Source: Entomortierella parvispora E1425 (lineage: Eukaryota > Fungi > Mortierellomycota). From it: a stretch of DNA of 64,000 bases. The position numbers were made by a program, and so were the translations under genes. Of the stretch, positions 643 to 54,092 are shown piece by piece; the stretch's first letter is position 1, and every line of letters begins with the position of its first letter. The notes under the pieces were generated by a model. That model ran no database searches and was not told where the DNA came from. It was given only the letters and a program-made list of their open reading frames with translations. The stretch is taken from contig BQFW01000015.1 in assembly GCA_020891255.1 (NCBI GenBank), forward strand, positions 992,001 to 1,056,000, in the 5' to 3' direction.

Positions 643-648
643 CACGTG
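643..648. promoter_or_regulatory. E-box (GTCACGTGAT) upstream of tRNA-Gly
   Basis: CACGTG at 643-648, 52 bp before the tRNA start at 700. Confidence 0.6.
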
Positions 649-699
649 ATATAATGGGATCTTAAATGTTTGGAATAAAGTTATTTCCATCTTGATCAA

Positions 700-770
700 G
701 AAAGTGTAGTATATGGGTATCATTCCGGCCTTCCAAGCCTGAGAACCGGGTTCGAGTCCCGGCACTTTCA
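700..770 (+). tRNA. tRNA-Gly(TCC)
   Basis: Acceptor GAAAGTG/CACTTTC plus A73; anticodon loop CTTCCAA; T-arm CCGGG-TTCGAGT-CCCGG; T-runs downstream. One mismatch each in the D-stem and anticodon stem. Confidence 0.88.
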
Positions 771-1182
771 TATTTTAGTACCTTTTCTTTTTTGTCACTA
801 CGTTGAGTCTAACCGCCGAATCACACATGAAGCATGAGGCTGCCGGCATTGCCCTCATGTGCTGCAACAGCAATCTTACGGTAGGGCTGACAAGGCTGAT
901 GGAAAATGTTTTTTTTTTTTTGGGTTTATCTATTTGAGGCCTTGATCGAAGCGCAGTGTAACACTCCTTGGTAGGCAGTGACGACCGACTGAGCCGATGC
1001 CAACGGGGCTGGTGCCAACGGGCTGGTGATCTGTCCCCTCACAGGAGGTCAGGTCGTTGGCGAGTCATGGAAGGCAGAGTACAATGATGTCCACAAAGCC
1101 GTGTCCGATGGCTGGTACCATGGAGGCGGTTTCGGGCGGCAACTTCGGGTTTGCGGGCTTGTTGCGAACGAGGTGGAGCTCA

Positions 1183-1270
1183 CTATCTGACAACCCAGGT
1201 TTCCATGCAATTTTCCAAAGTGTGACTGGTGGGTTGTCAAACAAAACGAACAACCTGGGTTGTCAAATAG
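1183..1270. mobile_element. 88-bp MITE-like element with 19-bp terminal inverted repeats
   Basis: CTATCTGACAACCCAGGTT (1183-1201) is the reverse complement of AACCTGGGTTGTCAAATAG (1252-1270) with one mismatch. An extra internal GGGTTGTCAAA copy lies near 1231. No clear target-site duplication. Confidence 0.5.
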
Positions 1271-1479
1271 ATAAATCCTTTTTTTTTTGCTATGTCGAGC
1301 CAAAGAAGGATCCCTGCACACTAAACATTTTACTCTTCTTTATTACACGGCTACGAGTCGGGGCATTTGCTGTTGATAAATGAACCCGGCACAAATACCG
1401 TCTGTCACCTTGGGATCGTCTTCGGCGCCAGGACAAAGGCCGGAGTGAAGTTTGCCTGTTTAACGTACAAAAATGATGA

Positions 1480-1515
1480 CACGTGATATTCACGTACGAT
1501 TATAGTAGTCACGTG
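1480..1515. promoter_or_regulatory. Two E-boxes upstream of tRNA-Val
   Basis: CACGTG at 1480-1485 and 1510-1515, plus near-match CACGTA at 1491-1496; the tRNA starts at 1588. Confidence 0.65.
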
Positions 1516-11843: not shown

Positions 11844-12379
11844 GTGTTGGCTAGAGTATGTCGCTGGAGAATGCGGGCGCGGTGTATGTAGTTACGTGTA
11901 ATAAGGGGAGGGGAAGGAGGGGAAAAGGAAGAGAAGGAGCGATGAGAGAATTGCGGAAGCAGACTGACTTGTTTGTTTGCTATGTCCCGTCACATTTTCG
12001 AGACAGAGCCTATCAGCCGTGGAGGTCGGGGTCTGGTCTGGGCCAGGAGTGCCCATATTAATATTCGTTTGAACCACTGTTTATTAGGACAAGAGGAAAA
12101 AAAAGTCGAAGAGAGCACGGGTATAGAGACTCGAGTAGATGGAGTGAATGTGATGGGAGGGCAATGCAACAGAGAAAGCTGACAAAAGAAAAAAATAAAA
12201 TAAAATAAAAGTAGCAGGGGTGGGTGGGAATAGGGCAGAGAGCATCATAGGTAATACATGGTAGATAGTAGATACAAGGGCTACAAAGGCGCCAGTGAAT
12301 AAGATCAAGACGCACAGAGGGAATCAAAAACACAGAAGAGGAGACAAATGATAGCAGGAACGAAAGCAACAACCCGTCA

Positions 12380-15300
12380 TCACGTCGAAGGAGGAGCCAT
12401 GTTGAATGGAGGTTGTTGTTGCTGCTGTTGCTGTTGCTGCTGGTCCAGCGTGTTGTCAGGTGCGACCATCAAGTCTGCAAAGCTCGAGCCGGTAGTAATC
12501 GAAAGATTTGCATCGCCCAGTGGGGCAGGCGTACTCATTCCAGTCATCATGGTTTCGGACGGCGAGGATCTCTGACTTTGGTGTCCAAGTGCGGCCAACA
12601 GCTCCGAGGCATCTTGCGATGTTCCTGCTCCCATTCCTGGGGAAGATTGTGCCAACATAAACATGTTGTCTACTCCTCCAATGGTAGAGCCACCTTGGTC
12701 ATGCATTGAGCTCATAGTCAAGGGAGTAGCCTGTTGCGCTCCAGCTGGAGGTGGGGACGCCAGACGCTGGTGTGCCCCTGCCATTGCATCAGCAGGCATA
12801 TTTATGGGCGTCATGGCCATGGTCATGTTTAACGATCCCGCGCCATTGTGAAAGTTCATTGACGACTGACGACTGTGGCCTCCGTTAACGATGTTGGGAC
12901 CGGGGGTGGCCCCCATACTCTCCAGAGTTGGTGGTGCAACAGTCGATGGGTAGCCAGGTGAACCCACAGGAGTACCCTGCATAGAGCCGTTCATAGCAAC
13001 GACGGCAGAATGCTGTTGTTGGAAGAAACCACCATCCATGGTCATGCTGTTCGAAGCATCAATTTGCTGTTGTTGCTGCTGTTGCTGCTGTTCGTCCAGA
13101 CTTGCCATTGAAACACTGCTCATAACCATCGATAAAGATGGAACGGATGACGACGATGAGTGGTTCGAGAGAGATGGCTTGATAACGATATTCAAGCCAT
13201 TAATGCTGTCTAGCCCAGTCGCGACGGATCCATTAAACACACCACCGTTTCCGGTGCTTCCAGGACTAGGAGAGTTGGCATTTGATGACAGTGCGCTCCC
13301 TGTCAACAGCGTCGAGCCCATGGCCGAGTCAGATGGGGCACTGCTAGCCATATTAAAACCGGCAGTCTGACTAAGCTGTCTCTGATGGCCACTATGTTTT
13401 GAAACTTTTCCCGGGTTGGAGGTAAAGTCGGGATGATATGGATGGCTGTGATGCGAATGCTGTTGCTGCTGAGAAGGCGCTGTTGATGAACTGTCAGTAG
13501 CCGTTGGATCGGTCGATGATGATGGTAGGACACTGGAGTTGGATCCTGGTCCTCGCATTGCTCGATGGTGCCCATTCCGTTTCGAATCGTGCGCAAGCTC
13601 GTGCTTCTTAAGAGAGCGGGCGTGGTAGTAAGCCTTCGGGCATCCCTCAACTGAGCAAACGTATGGGCGGATGTTGGAGTGGGTCTTGGTGTGGGTCGTC
13701 AACGAGTCTGGACGAGAAAACTTCTTGTCGCATCCTACAATACAAAACCAAAGCGAGTGAATAAAAAGCAGAGGAACATATACAATATCAATCTCAAAGA
13801 AAACAACTAGTTACCTGGAACAAGGCACTTGAAGGGGCGCTCTCCAGTATGCGTTCGCAAGTGGTTATACATCTTGTGCCTCTTTGTGAACGGCTTCTGG
13901 ACACGGTGGCACCCTTGCCAGTCGCAACTATAGCACGCCTTGCCGCTTCCAATATGTTTCTCAGTCACATGCTCGTTCAGGAGGTCCATCGTCTCAAAAG
14001 GGGTATTACAGCCGCGCCAGAGGCACATGAGTTGACGCGGCTCGGATGTCTCTTCTGAAATTGCGCTCGAAGAGACCTTCCGCTGTTTCCTAGGCGTACT
14101 CTCATCGCCATCGTCCTCGTCATCCTCATCCTCATTGTCTTCATCATCGTCATCGCCGTCCTCGTCGTCCTCGCCATCTTCTGTTGTCTGAGGAATAGAT
14201 GGCGTTGAAGAAGTTGACGTGACGGTGACACTTTGCACTGCCTGCAATAAAGTATTGATCTGAGTAGCTGGTGGATCTTCCTTTTCTGCTTCTTGAGAAT
14301 CAGCGATGGATTGCGGTGCAGGCGAGGGTGAATGCCCATTTGGCAAAGGCGAGAATGTGAGCATCTGAGGTTGCTGATGGTGCTGTGGCGGAGAGGCAAC
14401 TGGATGGAGGTTGACTATGATCATGAAATGGAATAAGAGCAAAGGTGAGCGATTCGTTTTCAGGCTGAGATGGTGATACAAGTCTATAAACATACCATGC
14501 GCGTCTTGCGTAATATCTTCAGCCTTGACATTGCTTAATCTTCTCCCAGGCAAGGCGCCTTCCATTTGTCGTTCATACTCCATAACTTTGTCGATCAACT
14601 CTTGTTTTGAAAGTTCAGCAAGCTCAGATCGCGTCGAAGGGGGTTCCAAAACGTCCATTGCTTCAAGCTTTACAGCTGTTTGCTGATCATTCAAGTTTTG
14701 GAGCTGAAAGTTGGATGAGACTTCCATGATTGTGTCCATCAATGAGTTGCAAACGGGTCCCATGGTTGGCGAAGGTCCTGAAAGTGGTCCCGGTGAGTAA
14801 ATCTGCCCTGACTCATTAGGAGATAGGAGAGCAGACACGGGGGGCATAGCCCGTGCCTGGATGTCTGCAACGTTGATCTTCAATCCAGCAGCGGCAGCCG
14901 CCCTTGGGGATCGACTCTGATGCGGCTCAACCTCAACCCGTCGCAGGTTCTCGAACATGGCTTGCTCTTTTGCCGCCATTTTCTGCTGTTGTTGCTGTAA
15001 AAACTCTTGTTTCTGGAAAGCAATGCGAAGATCAGGCGAGTGATGCCCTGAGGATGGATGACGGCGGTGGCGTTTAGTAGGGTCAGCGAGCGATGCCACA
15101 ACTCCTTCAGGAGGAGTGAATGCGGGAGTTGAAGTTGTGCTCAGTGGCAGGGGTTGCATGGACGGGACCATGGGTGTGAACACGCTCATAGACTCTGCAG
15201 AAGACAAAGGTGTCGAATAGCCCATATCCACCGGTGTATTAGAGCCTCCAGAGTGCATCAATGGTTGGTTGAAATTGGCCTCAGCATGGGTTTGCATGAC

Positions 15301-24041: not shown

Positions 24042-24482
24042 GATTAAACGGAATCATTCATCCAGAACTTTTTCTGACCTCTTCAAAACGTGCCACTGGC
24101 GGCTTGGTGCTTGGCCTCGGTGGAGACCATCCGTAGCAGGGGAAGTAGAGTATATCAGTGGCTTCTGGCTCTTAGCTTATCGTCTAGTGTTGCTACTGTA
24201 CATGTATAGACCCATGCGCACATCACGTGATGTATTCCGAACCATTCAGGTCCGCGGCACAAAAAGAGAGACCAGTCTCAGTCAACGATGGCCACGAGGG
24301 TTCTCTGGCCGTTGTTCTCGAGACTGCCTGGCCGTGTACCCTATCGGTCCAGACAATCAACACAAAATTGGACCCCCGGTAAAGGTTTTTTCTGTCTTTT
24401 GTCTTTTCCTAAAAATTCATCGTCTTGCTCCTTCCTTTATTTCCTCCTCTTTCCGTCGCCGCCACTTCCATACAACGCAGCG

Positions 24483-26113
24483 ATGAGGTTGCTGCCATTC
24501 TCCACTTCTGTCACAACAGCGACCGCTGTCCTTCTCCTTCTTTCATCAGTCTCAACCACATCACTAGCCACAGAGACTTCGATACGATTTTCAAAATCTC
24601 ATATCTCAACAAAGGACCTCCCCAAATACCACCCTTACGATACCCTCGCCAAACGAGCTGGCGATAGTCATGATGAGCATGACCACCCTGCCCCAGTCAC
24701 GATAACAACAACAGTGGCTATCGCGCCGATTACTGGCCCAACACCTACTCCAACAATCCCAGATCATGACCATCCCCACCCGCAGGAAGGAAGACTCGAG
24801 GATAGCCATGATGACCATGCTGGACATGATCATGGTGAGTCTGAATCCGATGCTGGACACTCTCACGGACCCGCCAGGTAATATCCATGTTTCCATCAAT
24901 CACCCTTTCCCACTCCCCCCTTTTTGGTGGCAACTGCCGCTATTCTCAAACTGAAAGCTAACGTTTATTTCATTTGGCCCTTTTTTCCTGTTACAGAACC
25001 TGCGACGACCATGATCATGATCACGGAGCTTATGTTGTTTGGCATCATATTGTGGCCATCCTGGTCCTGATGCTGTTTGCTGGACTCGGATGTGTCCTGC
25101 CCATGATGATCCGTGACAGCAGCCGATCAAGATTCGCCGTTCAGCTTGGAAAATACTTTGGCGCTGGCGTGGTCCTCTCTGTGGCATTCATTCACATCCT
25201 CCCCGAGGCATTATTTTCATTGACACACCCTTGTTTGTCCAAGTCTTGGACTGATGACTACCCTGGCTACGCCCCCTTGATCATGATGGTTTCAGGATTG
25301 ACGATGCTGGTCATTGAGTTCTTGGCCTCATCCGTGGCAGTCAGTGTCGAGGCTCGGAACAAAGAAGCTGCTGCTGCCGCTGCTCACAGTCACGACCTTG
25401 AGGTACAAGCATGGAGCGTCGAACCGCAGGAGCATGAGCACGACCGTGGCCACGACCACGACCACGATCATGATCACAAACACACTTCGCCCATTCACCC
25501 TCTCGACAGCTCCGAGACCGTCTCGCCTTCAACTGTTACCTCGCCTGTACGCAAGACCTCATCGCATGACCTGGATGGCTGCAACCACGCTCATGGTCTG
25601 ACACTGTTGCAATGTGGACCCGGTGTGTCCACCAAGGTGTCGACCTACATGCTTGAACTTGGAATTGCATTGCATTCGGTCTTTATTGGTATCGCCTTGG
25701 GAACTTTGGCTGGCTCGGAGTTTGTGGCCATGACAATTGCCATTTGCTTCCACCAGTTCTTTGAGGGAATAGCCTTGGGCTCTAGGATCGCCGATCTGAC
25801 CTTCCCAGGCCGCAGGTGGTTTCCTGCACTTTTGGTGGCGATCTTTGCATTGGTGACACCGTTGGGCGTCGCAATTGGCATGGGTATGCACACAAGCTAC
25901 AAGGCCAACTCGGCCGAAAGTCTGATCATCAAGGGCGTCTTCGATTCAATTGCTTGCGGAGTGTTGCTCTACACGGCTTTTGTCACACTTCTTGGAGGCG
26001 ACATCCTCTACTCTGAAAGGTTCAGAGCAGAATCCAGGGCTAGCAAGGCATCTTATCTGGTTGCGGTCTGGATGGGAGCCCTCTCAATGGCTGTCATTGC
26101 GCTGTGGGCATAA
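24483..26113 (+). CDS. ZRT1: ZIP family zinc transporter (Zrt1-like) with signal peptide and His-rich N-terminus (intron 24878-24996)
   Basis: KYFGAGVVLSVAFIHILPEA; LELGIALHSVFIGIALG; ICFHQFFEGIALG; HDHDHDH loop. Confidence 0.9.
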
Positions 26114-31426: not shown

Positions 31427-34021
31427 CTAGGCTGTCAAGGGCCAGAGACCAGCTGCAGAGAAAGAAGACGAGTGCGCCTCCTCCAAGTCGTCATCTACCG
31501 AGGTCAACGTCGAAGCTCTAACCGCGGCTCCAGTACCAGCCAAAAATTCGTCCAGACGGTTCATGGCAGGCATGGGAGGAGGAGAGCTGAGCGTTGGTGA
31601 AATAGGAGACAGTGAAGAAGGAGAAGTCGAGGAAGAAGAATCTGAAGAGGTAGAAGAGAATGAAGAGTGGTATCGATGGTAGGACTGCTGGGGCTGTTGA
31701 TGGCTCATCTTTTGGTTTTGCTGTTGAAAGAACATTTGATTTTGTTGAAGTTGCTGTTGCAGCTGTCCATGGCCCAAAAGGGACTGAGAGTCAAAGGAAG
31801 GGAATGAGGAGCCAAACAACTGAGAATGAATCTGTTGTTGCTGTTGCTGTTGTTGCATCTGCTGTTGCTGTTGACGCATCCACAACATCCTAGCCTCTGT
31901 TTCCTGTGTCTGTGTCATGATCTGGCGCTGCTGGTGGATCCAGCGAGGGAGAAGCAAAGTTTGTTGCTCACCGATGTAAGAATGGTCCTGTTCGTAGTAC
32001 ATCAGCAAAGACTGCAACATGTCGTAAGCCTCTTCTTTCGACGGCACCTTCCGCATCTTCCCGTCGACACTCATTCCAAAGGCAGCCGCAGGGACCGATC
32101 CAGCAGTCGAGGCAGTTGCTGAGGTTGTGGAAGCCAACTTGGTAGGGTCCAAGGTCGTGGCCATAGGCGAGATGGTTGACATAAGACAGGGAAGTTGTAA
32201 ACCAGTCATAGATCCAAACAAGTTGGGATAGGCGTCCATGATTGCTTGAGGTGACTGGTGCTGAGGTTGAGATTGTTGTTCGTAAGACTGGTGCTGAAGC
32301 AATGATGCGGTCGGTTGTATGCTCAAGATGCTGCTGTCGCTGCACTGAGGTTGTTGCATCATGGTCGAGGTGGATAACACTCCAGCGGCAAAGCTTTGGC
32401 TGGCATCTGTGGGACCGCTATGTCTGGACCGCTTCTTAGGGGAAGGGGCCGCCGGTGAAAACTCATGAGTGGAATGATACTCTTCATCGACGTCGTCATC
32501 ATCCTCACCATCCTGTGCACCGTTTTCGCCTTGGTAAACCACCCCCTCGGATCCGTCCTGCTCCACCTTGACTTTGACTCCACCATCGGTAGGTGAAGGG
32601 GTCGAGGTGGTTGAGGAGACAGAGGATTGGTTCTCGTGGTGATCCATCTCGACGATCCAACGGTACTTGCCGAGGCGATCAGCAGCCCATTGAACGCCCA
32701 ATCTACGCTTGAAGTGTCGAAGCCAACCAAAAGAGCACCGCATACGACTTGCGCTGGGAATAGACTGAGCGAGGCGAAGAGCATGCGATTGAAGCTCGGC
32801 ATCATTGAGGCGTCGACCCTGGCTATCGACTGAGGCGGGGCTCTTGAGGAAGGCGACCATAGCTCGGTCGAGCTCAACCGAAGCTGGTTCTCGCACGCGC
32901 TTGAGCTGGCCCTCCCATCTTGTGCCGACTATTGTGCGTGAAGAAAAGAAAAGGAATTGAAATTAGGTCAATATAGAGTTTCGTTGGGCACCCCAAGAAT
33001 CCACCCGAGATCAGGCCATGGTTGAAGATGATCATCATGCGGAGCTCGGCAGGATCACCCCTGAGTTCAGCCGAGGAGCTGTCGGTCACTAGCCGAAGCG
33101 AGCCGACCGAGGGCACCTGCGCGCCGAACAAGGTTGATTGAATATCAATTTTAAAGGGGGTCAAATACACGGCAGGCTCTCAAGCGATCCAAATCGACCG
33201 ATGACTGCAAAGTTGGCCAGGGAAGTGAGGTGGAGGGAAACGAGACACATGAAAGGCAAACAAACCGATCTTGTGTTTGTGCGAGGGTTCGTTGAACACG
33301 GGAGTGGAGCGATGCGATCCATTTCACTACACCTCGCCACTGGGACTGAACCAACCAAGCTTTCCGTTGTGGAGAAGAAAGAGCGAAGTTCAAAGGGCGC
33401 GGGCAGTGGGGATGGTGGGGGGTAAATCAAGGTTGGGATGTGTAATGCAAATTCTGTCCTTCTGACCATACCTTCACCTGGGGTGCCCTCGGCGGAAACG
33501 GACGACCGATCACTGGCAACACTGACGCTCCGGCTTCGCTTGCTCTTGCTACTGCTGTCAGTGTTGCTGGCTTTCTTGTTGGAGACCAGAGTCGTTGCCG
33601 ATACGGATGCTGACACTTTGGATGATGCTGTTGAAGCGGCGTCCTTGTTCCTGTTCTTGTTCGGGCTGACTCTGTACTTGTTCACACGCTGACCATCCTT
33701 GCTCTGCAAAAGACAGGCGTCCTGTGCCAGTGCCATCGTATTTGTAAATCCCACTACTGTGCCGTCACCATTTGCTGTTGATGAAGTCAATCCGAGACTG
33801 TTCTGCATGGTCTGGTAGAGGTCCTTGTGGCCGGCCATCAAGGACGCGCGCTGTTTGTGAAGAATAGAGTACACAGTGACGCGGGCAATGCGGAGTCCCC
33901 AGGTAGCTTGTACCCAGTCGCAGACTTCAGTGGGTCTGAGCTTGTGGGTGTCGGCCTGGTGGATCAATTGACGCTTTTGTTCGCGAGTAAGCGAAGTGTG
34001 TTTTTCTCCAAAGACGCCCAT
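31427..34021 (-). CDS. CENP-B/pogo(Tc5)-type tandem HTH DNA-binding protein lacking a DDE domain (intron 32929-33471)
   Basis: HTH1 LTREQKRQLI...EVCDWVQATWGLRIARVTVYSIL; HTH2 ELDRAMVAFL...NDAELQSHALRLA...CSFGWLRHFKRRLGV; C-terminal VPSKEEAYDMLQSLLMYYEQ helix; polyQ; clean GT-AG intron. Confidence 0.8.
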
Positions 34022-39662: not shown

Positions 39663-39876
39663 ACAGTGATAGCAACCGTCGTTGGGTCTTCGGATGTTCA
39701 AGAATAACAATAAAACGCAACAACATGACCGCCGATCTTCAGCGTCACCTTTTTGGTATCGTTTGGTCTGACCCAAAAAAGATGGTGAAAGGAAGAATCT
39801 AACCAACGACTGAGTCGTTAACCAGGTTATCCGCCAACCATCGGGGACTAGGTGATGTCCACCATAGCCAAAAGTG

Positions 39877-39949
39877 TGGAGCAGCTGGTAGTCGAAACCA
39901 GTGCCTCTCCCATGCGAAGGGAGCGCTCTACCAAATGAGCTACAGCCCC
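39877..39949 (-). tRNA. tRNA-Ala(CGC)
   Basis: GGGGCTGTAGCTCATTTGGTAGAGCG-CTCCC-TTCGCAT-GGGAG-...-CTGGT-TTCGACT-ACCAG-CTGCTCCA; the G3:U70 alanine identity pair is present. Confidence 0.93.
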
Positions 39950-40028
39950 CATTGAATCCAACCCTATTGGCCAGATTTTTTTAAAAAAATCAACTCCGAA
40001 CTTATTGGGACTGTGTGTGTGTGATAGA

Positions 40029-40074
40029 CACGTGACGAGCACGTGACCGACAGAGTGGTGGGATGTATCACGTG
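40029..40074. promoter_or_regulatory. Three E-boxes upstream of tRNA-Ala
   Basis: CACGTG at 40029-40034, 40040-40045 and 40069-40074, 80-125 bp upstream of the minus-strand tRNA start at 39949. Confidence 0.7.
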
Positions 40075-53131: not shown

Positions 53132-53769
53132 CACCACATCCTTTTCAAGAGCATTGTAATAAAAAAGCTTTCACAGAAGTTGTGGTTCAATATGTGTACA
53201 TGGACTGAAAGTTCTATGCGATATCTATGGTATGAGGATGGAAGCAGTTCCTATTTCCCTCTTTTTTTTCTTTCTGTTTACTCGTCCATACCCTTCCACG
53301 CCTCTTCCAACTTTTTACGCTTCTCCTTCGACTTTTCAAAATGCTTCTTGCGATTGATATCAAACTGTTTGAAAGGAAGAGAAAGATGTCATCAGTGGAA
53401 AGAAAGAAAAAAAAGAAAGAAAGAGCTCAAGGTTCAAGATCACAATTTCAAGGTTTGCCGAATTCCCGAGAAAGGAGCTCGCTCTTTTTAACTTTGCTAA
53501 AGCCTCATACCTCGGCCTGTAGACAGTCGTTCATGGCAGCCTTAAGAGAGTTGCAACGGCCCAGGTACCGGTTGAGAATGTTTTCATTGTGACAATTGTC
53601 GAGCTCGACAATGATATCCTCGCAGGAAACATGCTTGTGAAGGTCCAACTTTGAATGCATTTTTTTGTGTGTTTGGAGTTTGACGATGATTTTGTGGAAG
53701 GATCAGGAACGGAAGAGCGAAGATGTGCTGCATGGTCCGCCCAAACGCCCCATTGGGGCTGATCCGGGA

Positions 53770-53811
53770 CACGTGATAATACGCAGTCACATAATACGAT
53801 ATGGTCACGTG
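53770..53811. promoter_or_regulatory. Two E-boxes upstream of tRNA-Asp
   Basis: CACGTG at 53770-53775 and 53806-53811; the tRNA starts at 53870. Confidence 0.68.
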
Positions 53812-53869
53812 ATAGACGTCGTGCAATTTGCTGAAAGACATCTCTAAATCTTATTCGTCATCAAGAAGA

Positions 53870-53941
53870 TCCCCGATAGTATAGTGGTGAGTATCTCCGC
53901 CTGTCACGCGGAAGACCCGGGTTCAATTCCCGGTCGAGGAG
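53870..53941 (+). tRNA. tRNA-Asp(GTC)
   Basis: TCCCCGATAGTATAGTGGTGAGTATC-TCCGC-CTGTCAC-GCGGA-AGA-CCGGG-TTCAATT-CCCGG-TCGAGGA-G; G73 discriminator; C4.A69 mismatch; TTTT downstream. Confidence 0.93.
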
Positions 53942-54092
53942 CTTATCTTTTGCCATTTTGCTCGAGGACAAGCTGGTAACCGCCAAAGCCAGGATAGCGG
54001 GCGGCCGGCATCTCTTTCTCTTTTCTGATGTCAAGAGATGGACCAGGACTCCCTAGTGTTTTTTTTAAGAAAAAAACAACAATTTATTTGAA

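Follow-up and report, generated by a model that had tools for sequence, protein, structure and literature searches.

Candidate functional CACGTG elements upstream of tRNA genes in a Mortierellaceae lineage

Fungal tRNA genes are textbook examples of genes whose promoters lie inside the gene. Among Pol III genes with upstream DNA elements, the type 3 promoters (U6, vertebrate tRNA-Sec) are made up of DSE, PSE and TATA elements and are enhanced by Oct-1 and Staf; the upstream TATA and CAA elements of fission-yeast and plant tRNA genes are TBP and start-site elements located within -35. Among CACGTG-type sites, RTCACRTG is the textbook Cbf1/CDEI form and is also that of the USF/TFE class, with T and A at positions ±4 and tolerance of CACATG as its hallmarks; such flanks are not typical of Pho4 sites (CACGTGGG) or of bZIP G-boxes. 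Cbf1 is a chromatin-opening factor. Myc contacts TFIIIB (through Brf1) at human tRNA genes without a DNA site; in the 5S rDNA spacer and close to 7SL genes, it acts with Max on a genuine E-box (PMC4482074). Few sequence-specific factors are known to act at tRNA genes. In fission yeast, the GATA factor Gaf1 binds tRNA genes globally, represses them and links them to nutrient signalling; it was presented in 2020 as the first factor to bind and repress tRNA genes globally (PMC7068653).

The stretch of DNA considered here (64 kb, all of it referred to below as the window) encodes proteins whose best matches are in the Mortierellaceae, with Haplosporangium sp. closest. The CACGTG sites at its tRNA genes resemble yeast Cbf1/CDEI and USF/TFE sites in their core and flanks (R-T before, A after), in their arrangement as single sites or small clusters, and perhaps in accepting a CACATG variant. 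In yeast, however, such sites act at centromeres and at Pol II genes of the methionine and other regulons, not at tRNA genes, whereas those found here are almost confined to tRNA 5' flanks. The Myc system is similar in that an E-box-binding bHLH-zipper protein promotes Pol III transcription, and in that the CACGTG sites of the 5S and 7SL genes are outside the gene and act via chromatin (H3 acetylation; PMC4482074). It differs in that its E-box cases are the 5S and 7SL loci, whereas here nearly every tRNA gene has a box of its own at -50 to -125. Gaf1 belongs to another family and represses; it was found by ChIP and not from a conserved motif positioned 5' of each tRNA gene, whereas in the present case the motif is the evidence. 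Type 3 promoters share the use of upstream DNA elements read by Pol II-type activators, but have fixed distances and a replaced internal promoter, whereas box number and distance vary here, there is no conserved TATA, and the tRNAs are normal. The TATA and CAA elements are likewise a lineage-specific modulation of type 2 promoters from the 5' flank, and a CAAGAA/CAACAAG-like start region is present here too, but the boxes are farther upstream and match a bHLH-type motif. On sequence grounds, a positioned cluster of predicted bHLH sites at almost every ordinary tRNA gene would be a new variation on these known cases. The preliminary description of this DNA knew of no precedent in early-diverging fungi, and no report of E-boxes at fungal tRNA genes was found in full-text literature searches.

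CACGTG sites at tRNA genes

ARAGORN and Rfam agree on exactly four tRNA genes in the 64-kb window, and Rfam finds no other RNA gene there. Scores of 51-65 bits with the Rfam tRNA model mark all four as normal tRNAs, and each is followed within about 20 nt by a run of at least four T residues. A canonical tRNA with a T-run terminator, as found in all four cases, is what identifies a type 2 Pol III gene with internal A and B boxes. The genes and the boxes upstream of them are:

641-650, +, single Gly box, GTCACGTGAT; centre at -54.5 from tRNA-Gly +1
700-770, +, tRNA-Gly(TCC), followed by a T-run (ARAGORN, Rfam)
1480-1485, +, distal Val box, CACGTGAT; centre at -105.5
1491-1496, +, variant box (T)CACGTA between both Val boxes
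1508-1517, +, proximal Val box, GTCACGTGAT; centre at -75.5
1588-1660, +, tRNA-Val(CAC) (ARAGORN, Rfam)
39876-39949, -, tRNA-Ala(CGC) (ARAGORN, Rfam)
40029-40074, -, three Ala boxes (40029, 40040, 40069); centres at -82.5, -93.5 and -122.5; the box at -122.5 is a full palindrome, ATCACGTGAT
53770-53775, +, distal Asp box; centre at -97.5; retained in one orthologous locus (L006), decayed in another (L016)
53788-53793, +, middle Asp variant box (GT)CACATA
53805-53812, +, proximal Asp box, TCACGTGA; invariant in 3/3 orthologues
53870-53942, +, tRNA-Asp(GTC) (ARAGORN, Rfam)

An exhaustive search of the window found 11 CACGTG sites against 12.5 expected from dinucleotide shuffles, so the total is not enriched. 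Eight of the 11 are located 52-120 bp 5' of the four tRNAs, with one to three per gene (binomial probability 3e-15); the chance of at least one upstream CACGTG at all four genes is 2.4e-7. The preliminary description, made from a scan by eye, had listed the same eight sites at the same four genes and only three others (6359, 15651 and 24224), and the exhaustive search confirms both counts. Its extended form of the motif, CACGTGAT(A/T)(A/T)T, does not hold up as well, fitting only about three of the eight sites; R-T-CACGTG-A-T(A) describes them better. It had also pointed to a co-occurring TACGAT. The positions given (1495, 40079, 53795) are right and the motif is nominally enriched (4 copies against 0.27 expected, in a post hoc test), but it is not conserved in orthologous loci, and for that reason little weight is placed on it. 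The Val and Asp flanks have a loosely similar layout of box, variant and box.

For a sample from outside the window, public metagenome contigs were scanned with 48 bases of the tRNA-Asp body only, so that the flanks had no influence on what was chosen. The scan gave six tRNA-Asp loci, all from one soil metagenome; one (L006) is orthologous to the Asp locus in the window, and the other five represent different gene copies. CACGTG is present at -49 to -110 in five of the six, and nowhere else in their 19.9 kb. The pooled set is thus of ten tRNA genes, four from the window and six of a single tRNA species from the metagenome, representing two to four closely related genomes. Nine of the ten have the exact core upstream. 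In the pool there are 15 CACGTG sites in 1,500 bp of upstream zone (-150 to -1 of the ten genes) and three in the other 82.4 kb, a difference of about 275-fold (Poisson probability 8e-32), and TCACGTGA occurs eight times in the upstream zones and once outside them. The centre of the proximal box is between -46 and -98, with a median of about -62 from the mature 5' end, and the pooled box centres show no helical phasing relative to the tRNA.

The 15 sites, when aligned, have R in 15/15 and T in 10/15 before the CACGTG core, and A in 12/15 and T in 11/15 after it, often followed by A. The pooled sites thus have the palindromic core, T at -4, A at +4 and purine before the T that define the Cbf1/USF class. 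Variants (TCACATG/CATGTGA and CACGTA) are found between and beside the exact boxes; TCACATG occurs three times in the zones against 0.09 expected, a 33-fold excess based on small numbers. The flanks may also be oriented: the distal position is G in ten sites and A in five, against 4 and 11 for the mirrored proximal position, a suggestive bias (p ~0.07, calculated by hand from the counts).

The single gene of the ten without an E-box, the minus-strand tRNA-Asp of L001, has another repeated motif in its place. At 819-1000 of that contig, in the same upstream zone, there are four copies of GGAAATAA(C/T), mostly as TTGGAAATAACG, about 18-27 bp apart, which could be an alternative upstream array. 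In another of these loci (L002, at about 100-165), two exact boxes are arranged around three tandem TCATGTGATTGG units with a 12-bp period; this looks like an expanded set of variant E-boxes.

Away from tRNAs, CACGTG is about threefold rarer in the window than a second-order Markov model predicts (three copies against 9.2 expected), and 90 kb of tRNA-free DNA from relatives has six copies against 16 expected. Such scarcity would be expected if stray strong sites were harmful, but it gives only weak support to this idea because two other CANNTG words, CATATG and CACATG, are also about twofold low.

A different sequence is shared by two of the four flanks, closer to the gene:

1564-1575, +, CTGGCCAATAGG, at -24 to -13 of tRNA-Val
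39963-39974, -, CTGGCCAATAGG, at -25 to -14 of tRNA-Ala

These are the only two copies of this 12-mer in the window. A tRNA-Val copy in sequencing run X8 has the similar CTAGCCAATAAGC at the corresponding upstream position. The 12-mer, which has a CCAAT core, may represent a second element close to the start.

Comparison with orthologous and related loci

The Asp locus could be compared among three orthologues: that of the window, L006, and L016, which is on a Logan contig broken inside the multi-copy tRNA body. Three further features are needed to follow the comparison:

53511-53660, -, first exon of a divergent Cmc1-like gene (ATG at 53660-53658; Cmc1 Pfam in the neighbours' orthologues)
53696-53721, GGAAGGATCAGGAACGGAAG block, invariant in the three orthologues, between the Cmc1-like start codon and the distal Asp box
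53857-53869, +, GTCATCAAGAAGA, the 13 bases abutting tRNA-Asp; invariant in 3/3 orthologues

Between the window and L006, the upstream DNA has diverged almost to randomness over about 200 bp. The DNA between the boxes is identical at 7/25 positions (28%) and the spacer from box to start region at 14/41, against 8/11 and 10/12 for the boxes themselves, which are still 36 bp apart; the 13 bases abutting the tRNA are identical at 13/13. In L016 the proximal box survives as ATCACGTGAC, the middle position reads ATCACATGAT, and the distal box is gone. A T(C/G)ACAT(A/G)A element is retained at the middle position in all three orthologues. In the three-way alignment of 156 upstream columns, the only invariant runs of at least five are TCACGTGA (53805-53812) and GTCATCAAGAAGA (53857-53869); with a background invariance of 0.22, a run of at least eight arises by chance in 5.5e-4 of simulations. 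Purifying selection on the boxes is supported by these alignments. GTCATCAAGAAGA is presumed to be the start-site and leader region, and no TATA-like or other conserved block is found between the Asp box and this region in the three orthologues. The GGAAGGATCAGGAACGGAAG block is probably a promoter or leader element of the Cmc1-like gene. A type 3 promoter was considered and rejected for the tRNA genes, given the variation in the proximal box centre (-46 to -98) and the lack of a conserved block between box and start.

Contigs of diverged strains were aligned to 1,401 letters of the window, for the most part matching no more than the tRNA bodies; only X3 and X8 gave further information. One contig of strain X3 begins to align at 1509, at the proximal Val box, with no listed difference before 1542. 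A contig of this strain joins position 786, just 3' of tRNA-Gly, to 1509, skipping 722 bp, so the Gly-Val spacer is shorter or replaced in this strain, and the distal Val box may be absent from it.

Orthologues of neighbouring genes were found in Mortierella alpina, Lobosporangium, Linnemannia, Podila and Dissophora, but few of these regions contain a tRNA. Around tRNA-Ala, contigs with Edc3-like orthologues (M. alpina, Lobosporangium, and four Logan/JGI contigs) either have no tRNA or end too early, and served only as tRNA-free background. Synteny around tRNA-Asp led to one more close orthologue (L016) and to a tRNA-Glu of Linnemannia gamsii (L013); in Dissophora, in Podila and on three Logan contigs there is no tRNA. 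This tRNA-Glu is the only tRNA in 140 kb of relatives' DNA, and the only one sampled from another genus. There is no CACGTG in the 21 kb around it, only a GACGTG half-match at about -65, and it has a CAACAAGA-like start region in common with the genes considered here. Together with L001, it indicates that the element is in principle dispensable; by itself it decides nothing, because one of the ten genes of the positive set has no box either. The viral and prokaryote-genome collections, scanned with all four tRNA bodies, gave no matches.

Overall, the pattern is seen in the genome of the window and in its close relatives, two or three in number and about 84-90% identical, which are represented by the metagenome population and by the Logan run of L012 and L016. 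The pattern of the preliminary description, which mentioned early-diverging fungi, is borne out for this narrow group and not for such fungi in general; the single tRNA sampled from another genus, that of Linnemannia, has no box.

Possible roles of the boxes

It is close to certain that the element is real and linked to tRNA genes. That it is functional is very probable, and the boxes are probably read by a bHLH protein of the Cbf1/USF class; for the effect on Pol III, which would be positive, the case is about evenly balanced. The proposal of the preliminary description, a bHLH-driven system in which a sequence-specific upstream factor or a general regulator marks tRNA genes, is supported in part: the boxes are tied to tRNAs, replicated in other loci, selected, flanked as in Cbf1/USF sites, and explained neither by Pol II genes nor by repeats. 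"Driven", however, is too strong a word. The best explanation, put forward with modest confidence, is that the RTCACGTGAT boxes are functional cis-elements of the tRNA gene unit in this Mortierellaceae lineage, with a presumed binding protein and a presumed effect on Pol III output.

According to this explanation, one to three boxes per gene, sometimes with CACATG or CACGTA variants, would lie just upstream of the expected position of TFIIIB, as placed by analogy with the yeast footprint on a type 2 gene. A bHLH(-zipper) protein of the Cbf1/USF class, acting as a homodimer, would be the most likely reader. In DAP-seq, Cbf1/Tye7-like motifs are bound by HLH factors from the mucoralean Rhizopus (PMC12638772), which makes a reader of this class plausible in this part of the fungal tree. 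Its most likely role would be that of an auxiliary upstream factor and not of a core promoter element; the variable number and distance of the boxes fit a cluster of transcription-factor sites rather than a core element. Such a factor could keep nucleosomes off the 5' flank and define how far upstream the Pol III complex extends, and/or it could recruit TFIIIB or make it more stable, with the outcome that tRNA transcription would be raised, or coupled to a signal, on top of the internal A/B-box promoter.

If true, this would open a tractable way, encoded in DNA, to study how Pol III output is set by chromatin and by regulators of the Pol II type, a question that Myc poses at human Pol III genes as well, and it would imply that a single fungal family can rewire its Pol III promoter architecture. 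Cassettes for small-RNA expression in oil-producing fungi of the Mortierella type would probably have to include the 5' flank and not the tRNA body alone. A broader version, in which the whole nuclear tRNA set is under one bHLH factor through a near-obligatory upstream module, forming a Pol III regulon possibly together with ribosome-biogenesis genes, is rather doubtful. Were it correct, a single protein responsive to nutrients or growth could control, across polymerases, how much translation apparatus is supplied, and the module would be, by analogy, a DNA-encoded counterpart of the protein contact made by Myc in animals.

Other explanations were considered. The boxes could be protective rather than stimulatory, acting as a roadblock or boundary against Pol II read-through, heterochromatin or mobile elements. 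Their position outside the presumed TFIIIB footprint on the upstream side would suit this role, as would the MITE-like element located 33 bp behind tRNA-Val, and Cbf1 sites are a weak roadblock to Pol II and to replication in yeast (PMC5052057). TFIIIB, however, is among the most potent yeast roadblocks and Cbf1 is much weaker (PMC5052057), so an added box would contribute little; moreover, the boxes are found on one side of the gene only, and a protective role is considered unlikely. A related question is whether proteins of another class read the element, which would still be functional: a G-box-type bZIP, an SREBP-like or Pho4-like bHLH, or a lineage-specific factor. CACGTG is common to many factors, and the strong tRNA-proximal A-T, often ATA, goes beyond the classical RTCACGTG, but T and A at ±4 and the apparent tolerance of CACATG are Cbf1/USF/TFE hallmarks, and a reader from outside this class is quite unlikely.

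It is very unlikely that the boxes are ordinary Pol II promoter elements of neighbouring genes or non-coding transcripts, with tRNAs that sit or survive in open promoter regions. The Cmc1-like gene does start about 109 bp from the distal Asp box, on the opposite strand, and is not part of the element; and of the three non-tRNA sites in the window, two are inside open frames (of 1,059 and 152 codons) and the third is near a gene for a ZIP zinc transporter. This last is a perfect ATCACGTGAT at 24222-24231, about 260 bp before the ZIP start (ORF 24974-26113 plus an upstream exon). It looks like a normal Pol II site, and the same factor presumably works at some Pol II genes. It is, however, the only box in a promoter-like position among many protein-coding genes in 64 kb. 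For several hundred bp 5' of Gly, Val and Ala there is no coding start, and what precedes tRNA-Val is just the 3' flank of tRNA-Gly. A shared bidirectional Pol II promoter element was rejected on this basis, a Pol II start being near the boxes at Asp only. The distance window of the boxes is defined relative to the tRNA, and the Cmc1 gene is present in Dissophora and Podila without a tRNA and without CACGTG beside it (the one CACGTG of L014 is at 985, a long way from its Cmc1 gene at 12300-12765; in L015 there is none). Lastly, the boxes could have been left behind by a mobile element or by duplication of tRNA flanks, or be clustered by chance. The loosely similar Val and Asp layouts might suggest a relic, but in an all-against-all comparison of 250-bp flanks, non-orthologous genes share only matches of 13 bp or less, consisting of the box or the CCAAT 12-mer, so that a transposon or duplication relic (solo LTR or TIR) was rejected; conservation between orthologues is also restricted to the box. 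Against chance stand the probabilities of 3e-15 and 8e-32 given above, and this group of explanations is effectively refuted.

Other repeated sequences and open frames

Several other repeated sequences are found near the tRNA genes. A 45-bp piece at 1324-1369, present once in the window, has matches on several distinct contigs in the assembly of each of four diverged strains, which makes it multi-copy genome-wide; it matches no Rfam family. Depth in run X3 is high at 1056-1121 and 437-580 as well. No small RNA gene was found near the Val boxes in Rfam at E values up to 1.

The MITE-like element behind tRNA-Val covers about 565 bp (1693-2257) and has imperfect TIRs of about 60 bp, with arms at 1693-1754 and 2174-2257 (best arm match 21/21). 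The motif WWCCGCCRA has 10 copies in 64 kb, five of which (811, 1714, 1727, 39829, 53978) are 36-67 bp downstream of the tRNAs, with all four genes represented; the right arm of the MITE-like element has three further copies. The motif lacks conservation in the orthologue L006 and may be a subterminal repeat or footprint of a tRNA-targeting transposon. Farther away, a 489-codon ORF at 31427-32896 on the minus strand encodes a Tc5/pogo-type transposase DNA-binding domain, and would be either a domesticated CENP-B-like gene or a pogo element.
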